NCBI GenBank assembly: GCA_907165135.1
Contig: OU015569.1
Span: 7,874,001 to 7,938,000, forward strand
Direction: 5' to 3'
Source: Oikopleura dioica
Taxonomy: Eukaryota; Animalia; Chordata
DNA: 64,000 bases
Below are positions 43,585 through 48,195 of the stretch, piece by piece. Position 1 is the first letter of the stretch. Every line of letters starts with the position of its first letter. The notes under the pieces are model-generated. The model was not told the origin of the DNA, made no database searches, and saw nothing but the letters and a program-made list of their open reading frames with translations. Made by a program: the position numbers and the translations under genes.

Positions 43585-45992
43585 ATGGAGGACTCACTGC
43601 GCGAAACTGTCTACTCAGGTTCGGTTCAGTATTTTCCGTATTTTTCGTTTTTTAAATTCCAATCTAATTCTTAAAAATCGGCGTAGCTCCACTTACCTGT
43701 TGCCATTGATGTTTGTCAACTTGCCCCTGCGCGTCGCTTATATAGCTAAAAATTTTTAACAAAAGAAAACAATTCTAGAGCCGAATGTTAACAATGTAAA
43801 ATCTCTTCGATTTTGAAAATTTGGCATCATTAAATTTTAACAATTAAATAAGTTAAAGTTTGTCTTGGAAATCGTTTTTAATAAAAAAAAAAAATTAAAC
43901 CTCAAATGCAGAATATGTGGAGGCCTGGAAAATTCATGAGAAATCGTCGCCGGAGGAAAAGCCGTTCGAAAATCAATATGCTGCTTTGAAAAAATTGGAG
44001 AAGATTCATGCTAGCTTGGAGGAAGAACTCTCCGACGAGGGAATCATCATGAAAGCGTCGCTGGAGCACTTCATCGGAAAGATCCATTACACGAGTGAAG
44101 ACAGACCCAGTGCGGTCCAGTCTCTGCAAAAGAGTCTTCGCACGCTAGAAGCCAACCTCTTTGACAACCGGGTGAGTACGGTCCTCGACGACTATAGAAA
44201 GATTATTTTCTAGGCGTTGGCTATTTTCATGAAGGCGACGAATGATCTGGCGATAATCTATTGCGAGAGAGAAGAGTACTCGAGTTCGTATGCGCTATTG
44301 AAACAAGGAGAGAAAGTTTACGAAGAAATCGGCGAGAAATCGATTCCTCTGAGCAGCATCTGGGACAGCTGGGAAATACTCAAGCCTGGCAATGAGCGAA
44401 ACACAGCAGACGGTAGAAAAGACGCCTTCGAAGAGGTCTACACGCACACTCTCTTCTACCTATCACAAACCTGCCAAAATTTAGGCAAAGTTGGCGAATC
44501 GTCGGACTACTGCGGAAGATGCCTCCATCGTCAGCTGAGGACAATTAGCTCGAAAGGTCGGCGTTCAAATCCAAGACTGCGTGCCGAAATTAAATTGCGG
44601 CGCTATCACGAGCTCACTTCTTTTACATATTTGATGTTCAGTATTGATTGCACTTACTTTCGAGGCAGTGCTGTTAAGGAAAGATTTACTTGCAGTGAAG
44701 GTTGAATTGAACGCAGAGACAAGAGGATTTCCAGCAGTTTTCGCTCCACGCAGCATGTCTTGGTCAATACTATCTGACGACGGACGACTACCTGTCGGCG
44801 AAAACGTGTCTTCTCGCCGCAAACAGAATCTTCGCGCAAGTTGATACTGTATCAAGCGATGATGGCGAGTTCGGCCGGAAAATTGAGGAAACTCGTAATG
44901 ACATTAAAAGATGCTGGATAAAATACTGCGTCGCTTTTTTGGAATGGTCATCTAAGAAACTGGCAATGAGAAGTGTAGCAGCTGAGCTAGAAGCCATAGA
45001 AGATGCGCAACCGCAGCAGTCAGCGATAAAGTTTGATTTGGAGAGGTTTAGCAAATATGAGGTATTGACAAAACAACATTTAATTTTTTCAGAAATATTT
45101 TCACAGTCTATTCGGACAGCTCTATTATCAATTTATCAATAATTTGCGCGATCATTCTCTGTTCTTCTGGGGATAGATCCCCAAGCGATCATTTTATTGA
45201 TTTTCGAATCAGCCAATTTTCAGGACGAATGCCAGAATATACCTTCCAAGGCAGTCCATGTCCTGCCCGAAGCGAACAAGATACACAAGCTTACTCAGAA
45301 GCTGTGCGAGAAGTCACTGGAATTTTTCAAATTCGACGGTTACGTTATGGATCACGTAGAGATATCGCAGGATCTTTCAAAGTCGTGGAAGAATCTAGCG
45401 GAATTCGACACCAATTTCGAAAGAAGATGCAAAATGCACAAACGGCGAATTGACTTGCTTACACCTTTGGTGGCTGGACTCAATCCTCAATACTATTTGC
45501 AAGTCGTCCGTCAGCTTCAGTACGAAATCGGCGAAGTCTACTCCGAAATGACGGAGCTCAAGATGGCCATCGCAAACAACGATGAAGTTCCAACAGTTCA
45601 CCAAATCAAGAAAATCAATGTTCTTGCAAACTCGGGGATCAAGTTCTTCACAGGATTCATCGACTCGTGTCGCGAAGCAGATAAAAAATTACCGAAGCGA
45701 TTCGAGAAGATTCTTGTTCGTCCTGTTTTGATGGCGCACTTTCATGTTGCTAGACTTTACGGGTGCGTTCCATAATCTTCACAGTGAGTAAGACATGAAA
45801 TCATTCAGAAAAATGATTTCGCCAGTGATGAGCGATCGCGTCGATTGGACCAAGAAAAGTTGGCAAGCATATAAAACGATTTTGATGTTCTGCGAGCAAG
45901 ATCCTTCAGCGAAAGACGAAATTCCGGATGAATATGACCTCGTGATTGAAATGGACGCATTGATGCCACAAAAACTTCAGCAGCTTAATTAA
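43585..45992 (+). CDS. KIFBP: Kinesin-binding protein (KBP/KIAA1279)
   Basis: SPEEKPFENQY; FEEVYTHTLFYLSQ..YCGRCLHRQL; IKRCWIKYC; FFKFDGYVMDHVEI; RRCKMHKRRIDLL; VRQLQYEIGEVY; FHVARLY. Exon 1 MEDSLRETVYS is spliced across intron 43619-43911. Confidence 0.95.
43697..43744 (-). promoter_or_regulatory. TATA box plus micro first exon (ATGGCAACAG|gtaagt) on the minus strand inside KIFBP intron 1
   Basis: Minus strand has TATATAA at 43738-43744, ATG at 43706 and a consensus donor GTAAGT at 43691-43696. Phase 1 fits the lipase acceptor (cag|GG ATG GAA AAC). Confidence 0.5.
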
Positions 45993-46050
45993 AAGTTTCA
46001 GTCAGAGACATTCCTTCAGAGTCACAAATGCTTCAATTTGCAATCCCGCT

Positions 46051-46171
46051 CAGGCTTCGAAAAAATGAGTCTCCGCGTTGTCTCTTCTCGATAACTGAGA
46101 CAGCGTGAGTGTCTCCATGAGGATGAATCACCGATAAAGAGGCAGCTCGGAGACTCATTTTTCGAACCCTG
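46051..46171. mobile_element. 121-bp hAT-type MITE with 8-bp TSD
   Basis: TIRs CAGGCTTCGAAAAAATGAGTCTCCG / CGGAGACTCATTTTTCGAACCCTG. Exact ATCCCGCT on both sides (46043-46050 and 46172-46179). Confidence 0.9.
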
Positions 46172-46243
46172 ATCCCGCTTTATTTATTATAACCTTCATT
46201 CACCATTTGTAATTAAATAAGTGCTTAGAATTGGTCTTTTAGA

Positions 46244-47724
46244 ATGTTGTTACACATCGCAATATTGCTCGCAATATTGCCAGAGACAAACTCTCGTCGA
46301 GGAGGAGGTAGCCGGGGAAGTGGCCGCACAAGCAGCCGCACAAGCAGTCGATACAACAAACCCACTTCATATAACAGACAGTCAACAAGTTATTCGAACA
46401 AAAACTATGGTGGTACGTCAAATCCTACATATTATAATAATAAGCAAAATCATGGCACGTCGTATACAAAGCCTAGAGATTCGTACAGTGGATCTAACTC
46501 ATACAAAAATAAGTATGGAAACTCTGGATACGGCGGCGTACCTTTAGCAGGTGACTATGGGGTTAGCGCGCTGTGAAAGCATTTTATTAATTTAATAAAA
46601 TCGTGTGCGGTAACGCCTGGTAGTATCCTTGATAACCATTGTGGATTTAAGGACAATCGGGCAGCTGGAACAGTCGACAAACTTACAAAGGTCCGACGTC
46701 TTATGCAGGTATGATTAATTATGAGAGTCTTTATAAACACTATCAGGTGGTACCTCGTGGAGTAGAACCAGCCCTCCCGTCAGTTCCAGCACGCTTAAGT
46801 CCTACAAAAACCCCAATTACTACGGTCTTCAGCAATCCGCAAAGAAGAAATCTATGTTTAGCAAGGTCAAAACCCCTTTGATGGTTGCAGGAGGTGCGTA
46901 CTTGGGATACAAGCTTGGCAAAGGCATCGGTCAGCTCTCCATGCTGAGGTAGGATTACGACTATCCTACATCCATTAAATTGCGAACCTAGTAATCCTTA
47001 CTCTTTGATGTCTCCTATGTATGGCGGTTATGGATACGGACCTTACTATAACTATGGGGGTTATCAACATAGCTACTGGCACTCGCAGCCAACGATGTAC
47101 CGGGAATATGCTTATAACAAGTACCCAGATCTAAAGACGGACTCATGCTACGAGTGCTCTTCTATCGGCGGGAGCAACCCCATTTGCGACGATATGGACG
47201 ATAAATACGGCGCCTCCTCTACAAACGCGTACGTAACTTCTTTTCATTCTTCTCTTATCTGTTTTCTAGTTTCCGAACGAAGTGCCCACAAGAAGGCTCC
47301 GTCTGTGTCGTTACTGTTGGACGAGTGTTTCCTGTAGTGAGCGAGGCAATGCCAGCAATTGACCCAAACAACACTGATCCGAATACGTTGAAGAAGTGGG
47401 AAGGCAAATCATTCACTCGGCGTGCATGCGTTCCGCCCAACCGCCAGAACGTGTGCGACGCGTACTGCCCAACTCCAATTCCTGGCTCTGATGTGTGAGT
47501 ATTTCGTCCTTTATTTTAGTTCAATGTCCTATACTCCGCAATTTAGGAAATACGCCGACGAGTGTGATATTTACATGTGTAACATGTGCGATACTGAGTC
47601 TTGCAACTCTTGGGGTCTCCTCTCCATGCCCGACAAAAATAACATAGAGACCGGTCGCGATTCGCAAGCAGCTTTCCAAGCGACAATCCCTCTTATGCTC
47701 GTTCTTCTCATGCTTTTCAATTGA
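46244..47724 (+). CDS. Secreted GPI-anchored protein: PrP/Shadoo-like low-complexity N-half plus Ly6/uPAR (three-finger)-like domain, 5 exons
   Basis: All introns are GT-AG and phase-compatible (46551-46746, 46949-46991, then two short introns). Signal peptide; RRGGGSRGSGR; Y/N/S/G-rich region; KKKSMFSKVK-TPLMVAGGAYLGYKLG; 12-Cys domain CYEC...CN; hydrophobic C-terminus IPLMLVLLMLFN*. Confidence 0.8.
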
Positions 47725-47826
47725 AGCTTTAAAATTTTTAAACTTATTAATATTCGCAATTTTATATCCAATATTGATATAGAATAAGCTAAAAATGCCC
47801 TTAAAAGTTATAACACTTATTGAAAA

Positions 47827-48195
47827 ATGCTCTCATCTCGCCTGCGATCCTTACTTTCTCAAATACCTGAACAGTCTCGTTGTATCCTTGTAGCCAAGAT
47901 TAATGCACCACATCTTCAACATTTACCTTTTTTCCGTATTAACTTAAAACTTCTCGAAATATCCCGTAAAGATTTTGTTCCATCTCAAATGCTTGCCTTG
48001 AACTCTTTCATTTCGAAACTGAAATCAATGAATAAAAAGTTTCCAGAATGTCAAGACCTTATTGTCAAAAATATGCCTGCATTATTCAAGAGTAAGCTGC
48101 ACACTCTTCCTCATTCTTGTAACGGTCTTTTATCTACATTTTAGTTGCATGGAGCGCTACAGGCATGATCAGAAAAAATGTCAAAACGCAATAGG
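47827..48195 (+). CDS. Possible small orphan gene (mitochondrial presequence-like start); exon structure unresolved
   Basis: MLSSRLRSLLSQ... ORF with a GTAAG donor near 48092 and a TTTTAG acceptor near 48144. No family recognised. Confidence 0.25.

Follow-up and report, generated by a model that had tools for sequence, protein, structure and literature searches.

Do animals other than vertebrates carry genes built like those of the prion protein (PrP) and its relative Shadoo? This question was raised by a gene on the + strand of the genome of the larvacean Oikopleura dioica, located at positions 46244-47724 of a 64,000-nucleotide (nt) stretch of DNA (contig OU015569.1, positions 7,874,001 to 7,938,000; called the window here). 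An original prediction had described the gene product as a glycosylphosphatidylinositol (GPI)-anchored protein that fuses a PrP/Shadoo-like N-half to a Ly6 three-finger domain and that was either a remote relative of PrP or a convergent design. The reading that we favored overall, with moderate confidence, was a larvacean GPI-type Ly6 protein that combines a Ly6/uPAR (LU) domain with a convergent PrP/Shadoo-like arm, in a layout like that of GPIHBP1. Of the two alternatives left by the original prediction, convergence was the more likely one, and a relationship to PrP was not supported.

Rebuilding the gene from the window yielded a compact gene of six exons, whose joined open reading frame (ORF) had 401 codons plus a stop codon. 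All five introns had GT-AG ends and were 101, 38, 43, 41, and 52 nt long, and there was no long ORF on the opposite strand of the gene region. The motifs listed in the original prediction were all present in the rebuilt 401-amino acid (aa) protein. The features of the gene and its product are as follows.

AG at 46241-46242, + strand: candidate spliced-leader trans-splice acceptor, one base before the ATG (tcttttag/aATG)
46244-46550, + strand: exon 1, with the signal peptide (46244-46294), the RG-rich start (aa 18-36), and the first portion of the Ser/Gly/Tyr/Asn-rich arm
46652-46708, + strand: exon 2, with a conserved piece of the arm (GSWNS..YKGPTSY)
46747-46948, + strand: exon 3, with the end of the arm, the Lys cluster, and the Gly/Ala core
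46992-47228, + strand: exon 4, with the Tyr/Gly-rich linker (YGGYGYGPYY, MYREYAYNKYPD) and then the start of the LU domain (CYEC...C)
47270-47494, + strand: exon 5, encoding the middle of the LU domain (central strands and a long loop); a metatranscriptome contig (47291-47468) lies inside it
47547-47724, + strand: exon 6, with the end of the LU domain (CNMCDTESCN), a conserved SWG..MPD, the GPI-type tail, and the stop codon
aa 1-17 (46244-46294), + strand: signal peptide, a hydrophobic N-terminus
aa 18-36, + strand: basic RG-rich start, RRGGGSRGSGRTSSR...
aa 18-152, + strand: Ser/Gly/Tyr/Asn/Thr-rich arm with seven SY motifs, variable in length among relatives
aa 153-188, + strand: region of the Lys cluster and MVAGGAYLGYKLGKGIG
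aa 154-163, + strand: Lys cluster, KKKSMFSKVK
aa 167-183 (46881-46931), + strand: Gly/Ala core MVAGGAYLGYKLGKGIG, which contains a glycine zipper (GxxxGxxxGxxxG) and is better conserved than the rest of the N-half
aa 189-232, + strand: Tyr/Gly-rich linker, with YGGYGYG from aa 199
aa 224-235, + strand: MYREYAYNKYPD
aa 241-363 (47146-47607), + strand: Cys domain, bounded by its first Cys and by the Asn that follows its last Cys (aa 362), and spanning introns 4 and 5
aa 301-303 (47367-47375), + strand: N-N-T sequon, the N-x-T of which is invariant in the family (N69 and T71 of alignment A1)
aa 371-401, + strand: tail, ending in 12 hydrophobic residues
aa 390-401 (47686-47721), + strand: C-terminal hydrophobic stretch IPLMLVLLMLFN, located by a hydropathy scan

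With exon 5 as the query, 1.84 billion representative proteins were searched, which returned seven members of one family; word-indexed searches that started from P0001 and from alignments of the family enlarged it to about 40 sequences. All of them came from JGI, ENA, or Logan assemblies; none was named, and none had a precomputed Pfam domain. P0001, P0012, and P0013 were 77 to 80% identical to our model and P0015 was 46% identical, full length. Within the limits set by word and length filters, every sequence recovered by the searches with exon 5 and with profiles of alignments A1 and A4 was an unnamed marine fragment belonging to this family; LU relatives standing alone, different architectures, and members from ascidians or vertebrates did not turn up. 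Within the reach of these searches, the family is apparently restricted to larvaceans, and it is undescribed, having neither a name nor a Pfam assignment. In the literature, we found no relevant link between Oikopleura and Ly6, and no mention of tunicates in the work on the prion protein and Shadoo.

The relatives bore out the spliced model of the original prediction. In the family alignment, joins 2 to 5 were colinear and gap-free with the continuous ORFs of the relatives' independently assembled transcript contigs; this was the case for all four of the relatives P0001, P0012, P0013, and P0015, whose contigs were 1.1 to 1.6 kb long. The ORFs of P0012 and P0015 were uninterrupted on contigs of 1.3 kb and 1.2 kb, respectively, which indicated that these contigs represent spliced transcripts. 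Join 1 was located in a length-variable low-complexity stretch and was the sole in-frame canonical option there. Two metatranscriptome contigs matched the exact allele, one at 47291-47468 (inside exon 5) and one at 47563-47798 (exon 6 plus about 74 nt of 3' untranslated region). Thus, the gene is real, and its expression is documented directly for the relatives and thinly for the exact allele.

The P0015 contig (L002) also opened with a template-switch remnant; next, at positions 9-48 and 4 nt before the ATG, came an exact copy of the 40-nt Oikopleura dioica spliced leader. A 40-mer identical to the P0015 leader has been printed as the O. dioica spliced leader (PMC6883708). Based on this leader and on the AG located just before its own ATG, the window gene is probably trans-spliced like P0015, and it may share an operon with the gene upstream of it.

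Both ends of the protein carried the secretory and GPI-type signals noted in the original prediction, and both were conserved across the family. In every full-length relative, the cleavage site predicted ahead of RRGGG conformed to the -3/-1 rule. The hydrophobic tail was kept in all relatives, with a differing sequence, and the small residues G379, S382, A384, and A385 upstream of IPLMLVLLMLFN were candidate omega sites. These features suggested that the product passes into the secretory pathway and probably carries a GPI anchor. Between the two ends, charge was distributed unevenly. The arm (aa 18-232, 46295-47121) had 28 Lys and Arg residues versus 2 Asp and Glu residues, and the segment with the Cys domain (aa 233-370, 47122-47628) was net acidic, with 12 Lys and Arg residues versus 19 Asp and Glu residues. 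Contacts between the basic arm and the acidic LU domain, within or between molecules, are plausible.

The Cys domain contained 12 Cys residues between aa 241 and 362, with a CYEC start and a C-N end. The count of 12 given in the original prediction was correct for the window protein, and the family core proved to be smaller: 10 Cys residues (aa 241, 244, 254, 273, 280, 321, 330, 354, 357, and 362) were kept in all relatives, and C334 and C349 were both missing in the P0015 and P0019 subclades. Because C334 and C349 were lost together, they probably form an extra disulfide. The C-N-S-W-G sequence at the end of the domain was invariant in alignment A1, and its N-S-W is not a sequon. An LU domain is defined by 10 Cys residues that are bonded 1-5, 2-3, 4-6, 7-8, and 9-10, a nonglycosylated Asn after the tenth Cys, and a length of 60 to 90 residues (PMC6600238). 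The domain that we examined had ten ancestral Cys residues with a C-x-x-C start and a nonglycosylated Asn directly after the tenth Cys.

Structure comparisons pointed in the same direction. For the structure, Atlas, and cluster searches, relatives (P0012, P0001, and P0013, at 77 to 80% identity) served as stand-ins for the 401-aa protein. An AlphaFold2 model of the Cys domain, built from a seven-sequence alignment, had a mean predicted local distance difference test (pLDDT) score of 77 and a predicted template modeling score of 0.70, and its matches across five structure libraries were nearly all three-finger proteins, with unrelated chains only lower in the lists. In the Foldseek search of the PDB, the top ranks were mostly the TGFBR2 ectodomain, CD177, erabutoxins (snake three-finger toxins), GPIHBP1, Lynx1, C4.4A, PSCA, and SLURP-2; none of the matches had an E value of 0.001 or better (the best was 0.39), and from rank 9 onward there were also unrelated chains (polyomavirus VP1, norovirus capsid, arrestin, and SSB). 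When these PDB matches were realigned with VIA-align, a three-finger neurotoxin gave a Z score of 5.5 (64 of 65 residues at 2.4 Å) and GPIHBP1 gave a Z score of 5.4. In AFDB Swiss-Prot, 28 of the top 30 matches were named as Ly6/uPAR proteins, three-finger toxins, or TGFBR2, and the other two were coral skeletal-matrix proteins; the best match was Drosophila twit (E value of 0.026, probability of 0.97). The AFDB cluster matches, with E4XG26 at the top, were mostly quiver/sleepless entries, and the Atlas shape search, with a QVR cluster at the top, yielded mostly quiver, sleepless, and QVR entries; in both cases, unrelated rows were lower.

Sequence-based methods gave a similar picture. The Pfam model QVR (PF17064) recurred below threshold in six relatives, with E values of 0.011 to 0.16 and 13 to 17 bits versus a cutoff of 27.3, and its alignments always ended at the C-N in register. 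The same clan was indicated for exon 5 by language-model features, and a profile of the Cys domain found nothing among the PDB sequences. Although no single score was strong, the independent methods agreed, and so we consider it highly probable that the Cys domain is a divergent Quiver-type LU three-finger domain, as the original prediction had proposed. The Quiver/Sleepless-type proteins (PF17064; qvr, twit, bero, and cold in Drosophila) were the best Pfam, AFDB, and Atlas neighbors of the larvacean family. They likewise have a single three-finger domain with 10 core Cys residues, a CxxC start, a terminal C-N, loops longer than those of the snake toxins, and a C-terminal hydrophobic GPI-type signal. 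In contrast to them, the larvacean family is below the Pfam threshold, has a domain of about 123 aa with a CxxC spacing of Cys 8 and 9, includes O. dioica-type members with an extra Cys pair, and carries, ahead of this domain, a disordered arm (about 215 aa) that is not present in the Quiver/Sleepless-type proteins.

This arm is the part that resembles PrP and Shadoo. When P0012 was modeled at full length, residues 11-230 had pLDDT scores below 50 (mean of about 26) and the LU domain had scores of 62 to 77, with only a short low-confidence helix at residues 164-170 (P0012 numbering), within the Gly/Ala core. Based on these scores, aa 18-232 of the window protein are predicted to be disordered; this region is strongly basic and rich in Ser, Gly, Tyr, and Asn. 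As its conserved elements, the arm had, in this order, RRGGG at its start, the Lys cluster, a glycine-zipper segment (AGGAY[LVI]GYKLGK), and a Tyr-rich linker of the YGPYY type; AGGAY, YK, and GK were invariant in the seven relatives, as were Y.YGPYY and YN in the N-half. The MYREYAYNKYPD motif (YRE...YPD), which was present in the window protein as originally predicted, was conserved in the closest relatives only, and the distant members read ...YNRYAYR... at this location. The Gly/Ala stretch that had been called a hydrophobic core was likewise present, but it was only mildly hydrophobic and contained Lys. A transmembrane segment at this location was rejected, as the mean hydropathy (about 0.8 by hand calculation) was below the scan cutoff of 1.2 and there were two internal Lys residues.

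Several searches connected the N-half with PrP. When a profile of the stretch from the Lys cluster to the Tyr-rich region (alignment A2) was compared to 177,635 distinct PDB sequences, the top match was frog PrP (1xu0_A, E value of 0.11), followed by a dynein light chain and an ECF transporter (E values of 0.23 to 0.7). Residues 20-112 of P0014 alone matched 1xu0_A over about 70 residues with an E value of 9.4e-4 and 22.8 bits, and the next match was 10 bits lower (E value of 1.2). The MVAGGAYLGYKLGKGIG stretch (46881-46931) aligned to the hydrophobic region of frog PrP. In the ESM Atlas feature search, a Prion cluster was the top match out of 7.7 million for both P0012:130-232 and P0015:87-185, with scores of 0.74 and 0.77 that are leads only by the tool's own rating; further PrP clusters were lower in the lists, and Shadoo was at ranks 27 and 10. 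Thus, PrP was the top match in two independent searches, and the resemblance of the N-half to PrP/Shadoo noted in the original prediction held up. Other searches were negative. P0015, exon 3 of the window gene alone, and a core-only profile had no PrP match in the PDB, and the Pfam models Prion (PF00377), Prion_bPrPp (PF11587), and Shadoo (PF14999) had no match at E values up to 10 in the exons and the seven relatives. The full-length P0012 sequence found only low-complexity noise and a glycoside hydrolase in the PDB.

Shuffle controls were used to gauge how much of this likeness is compositional. Smith-Waterman scores against the frog PrP residues that aligned to P0014 were compared with those of global shuffles and of local shuffles in 10-residue windows. 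The window segment scored 70, compared to 34.5 +/- 6.4 for global shuffles (z of 5.5) and 45.3 +/- 9.6 for local shuffles (z of 2.6, p of 0.018). The corresponding global and local z values were 8.1 and 3.6 for P0014 and 2.3 and 0.2 for P0015, and the local-shuffle z values ranged from 0.2 to 3.6 over the members. Because of these controls, the likeness is due neither to chance nor to overall composition; it is mostly a regional order, from Lys-rich to Gly/Ala to Tyr-rich. A modest residue-level part was centered on the common G-x3-G-x3-G-x3-G pattern, in which 9 of 13 residues were identical between P0014 and frog PrP by hand count.

If this likeness reflected true remote homology, the module consisting of the Lys cluster, the glycine zipper, and the Tyr-rich stretch would descend from an ancestor shared with the N-half of PrP/Shadoo, and it would have been joined to an LU domain in larvaceans and to the PrP helical domain in vertebrates. 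Six features do occur in identical order; the shared ones include a signal peptide, a low-complexity tract, a Lys cluster, a Tyr-rich stretch, a GPI-type tail, and a disordered N-half, as well as a basic Arg/Gly-rich start in the case of Shadoo and a Gly/Ala core with equal G-x3-G-x3-G-x3-G spacing in the case of frog PrP. Frog PrP was the single best of the PDB sequences with both the profile and P0014 alone, the two members that placed PrP clusters first in the Atlas were just 45% identical in the searched stretch, and the local shuffles (p of 0.001 to 0.057) indicated that residue order adds something, if little, beyond regional composition in most members. Moreover, conservation within the larvacean N-half peaks in this segment, just as conservation within the PrP/Shadoo N-half is known to peak in the hydrophobic region (PMC6815274).

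Against common descent, only one PrP sequence was matched. No mammalian PrP was found at E values up to 10, and mammalian PrP constructs with the hydrophobic region are presumably present in the same PDB sequence library. P0015 and exon 3 alone failed to match PrP, the P0015 signal was wholly removed by local shuffling, and the core-only profile (39 columns) had a single PDB match, to the GxxxG peptide lactococcin G alpha (E value of 0.37), which is a bacteriocin and not PrP. HMMER statistics are also unreliable on biased, low-complexity sequence. The exon 5 and profile searches found no intermediate sequences outside the family, and the YRE..YPD motif was not conserved across it. Gene and fold differ as well: PrP-family ORFs lie in one exon, whereas the larvacean gene has six coding exons, and PrP and Doppel have a helical globular domain (absent in Shadoo), whereas the model here was a beta-rich three-finger domain, in agreement with the original prediction that the globular part does not have the PrP fold. 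PrP is reported to have derived from a ZIP transporter ectodomain, and its family and genes have been reported in vertebrates only (PMC2745754, PMC3203146). Thus, homology to PrP was not supported: there was no Pfam prion or Shadoo match, most of the score survived local shuffling, the likeness was largely one of regional composition, and a RYYRENMHRYPN-like motif was not conserved. We judged descent from a shared module, and its joining to one globular domain in larvaceans and another in vertebrates, to be very improbable. Because only one PrP sequence was matched, no intermediates were found, and the published origin and range of PrP are as described, the best reading is that the arm of a GPI-type protein converged on the PrP/Shadoo pattern, which is more likely than common descent.

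What might such a protein do? GPIHBP1 and SP-10/ACRV1 are LU proteins with an N-terminal disordered extension, and the arm of GPIHBP1 speeds ligand capture by charge (PMC6600238). GPIHBP1 also has the order of signal peptide, disordered arm, LU domain, and GPI anchor that is predicted for the larvacean protein. By analogy, the larvacean protein could be a surface-tethered binder built like GPIHBP1. From the membrane outward, it would consist of an LU domain of about 123 residues, with 10 ancestral Cys residues and one lineage-specific Cys pair, long loops, and an N-glycosylation sequon, followed by an arm of about 215 residues. The three-finger domain would supply specific binding, and multivalent contacts through charged and aromatic residues would let the long, sticky arm catch a partner or cluster it. 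Self-association of the glycine-zipper segment is possible, and a phospholipase could release the anchored protein. Lactococcin G alpha, the match of the core-only profile, pairs helices through GxxxG motifs in membranes, which hints that the glycine-zipper segment could form a self-associating or membrane-active helix.

A number of observations weigh against one or another part of this tethered-binder reading. At the level of the transcript, neither metatranscriptome contig on the exact allele crosses a junction, there was no junction-spanning RNA read on the allele, and three species-labelled oligo-dT runs gave 0 reads and hence no test. In the case of the LU domain, 123 residues separate the first Cys from the Asn, versus a consensus of 60 to 90, with inter-Cys stretches of 18 and 40 residues, and Cys 8 and 9 are spaced as CxxC and not adjacent as in many LU proteins. 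No Pfam model, including UPAR_LY6, QVR, and Toxin_TOLIP, reached the gathering score, and nothing in Pfam matched the window exons when they were searched one by one. The fold matches were weak in absolute terms (template modeling [TM] scores of 0.3 to 0.5, Z scores below 6, and the Foldseek E value given above), and the three-finger call is itself a prediction from a model in which disulfide connectivity is not readable. The GPI signal was judged by hydropathy and small residues alone. Finally, the partner and mechanism were arrived at by analogy with GPIHBP1, to which the larvacean protein has no sequence relationship, and the arm of GPIHBP1 is short and acidic, whereas the larvacean arm is long, basic, and rich in Tyr, Ser, and Gly and contains a conserved glycine zipper.

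Two other accounts of function were considered. A specific form of the tethered-binder idea would be a scaffold for house building, in which the basic, Tyr/Trp-rich arm and the LU domain hold nascent cellulose or oikosin matrix on the oikoplastic epithelium until a phospholipase frees the pre-house. Aromatic-rich surfaces often bind polysaccharide, and full-length transcripts of the family recur in bulk plankton metatranscriptome assemblies, which suggests high expression. Drug experiments implicate GPI-anchored proteins in cellulose microfibril elongation and in pre-house release in O. dioica (PMC3071929), and the family appears larvacean-restricted, like many house proteins (PMC3390340). Among the oikosins, a GPI anchor has been predicted for two, oik44 and oik45 (PMC3390340), but a primer test indicated that our gene is not oik45. 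Specifically, both of the oik45 in situ primers were absent from the window and, by our own reading, their translations were not in the family, although strain divergence weakens this test. The other of the two, oik44, carries a phospholipase A2 domain. In addition, the main text of a single-cell preprint on the house epithelium made no mention of GPI, Ly6, or prion. We regard the scaffold as rather unlikely. The other account would be a Quiver/Lynx-type modulator, in which the LU domain binds an ion channel or receptor of excitable or epithelial cells and adjusts its activity, or helps to organize septate-type junctions, and the arm is accessory. The closest fold and Pfam neighbors of the LU domain, insect Quiver/sleepless, twit, bero, and cold and vertebrate Lynx1 and PSCA, are proteins whose functions are known, and Drosophila Ly6 proteins organize septate-type junctions. 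However, none of those proteins has a 215-residue basic arm, and fold class is no predictor of the partner, given the functional diversity stressed for this group (PMC6600238). This left the modulator a distinctly unlikely explanation.

The gene is located in a region of very tight gene packing, which is typical of the O. dioica genome. An upstream + strand ORF (45795-45992) stops about 250 nt before the ATG, and a downstream + strand ORF (47827-48144) starts about 100 nt past the gene and about 30 nt past the end of the contig that covers the 3' untranslated region (47798). The spacer upstream of the ATG contains a nested inverted repeat (46050-46172), with arms at 46061-46086 and 46137-46162 (26 nt, 88% complementary) and a second pair at 46050-46064 and 46158-46172. 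One arm matched only itself in the window, and the repeat may represent a small palindromic element or a hairpin with a regulatory role. The window contained no paralogue of the gene. E4XG26, the best AFDB cluster match to the Cys domain, is an uncharacterized protein of 265 aa (TM score of 0.51, 25% identity, E value of 3e-3). Its matching domain is at residues 135-242 and is thus likewise located behind a long N-terminal extension, and E4XG26 may be a distant paralogue of similar layout.

The Ly6/uPAR fold and the placement of a disordered arm ahead of an LU domain were already known; the new element is an unnamed family with a PrP/Shadoo-like arm, which is the nearest thing to the PrP/Shadoo N-half found outside vertebrates in the searches that we made. 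If homology were true, the prion family would have in these proteins its first relative outside the vertebrates, and the module would predate vertebrates and have been combined with different globular domains in two lineages; this would bear on the origin of the prion gene and would challenge or add to the ZIP transporter ectodomain model. If the likeness is convergent, two lineages independently reached one grammar (a basic start, a low-complexity tract, a Lys cluster, and a glycine zipper) on a GPI-anchored protein, and the family would be a useful natural comparison for the role of the corresponding part of PrP. For the biology of Oikopleura, the gene is a concrete candidate among the GPI-anchored proteins that drug experiments have implicated in the building and release of the house (PMC3071929).

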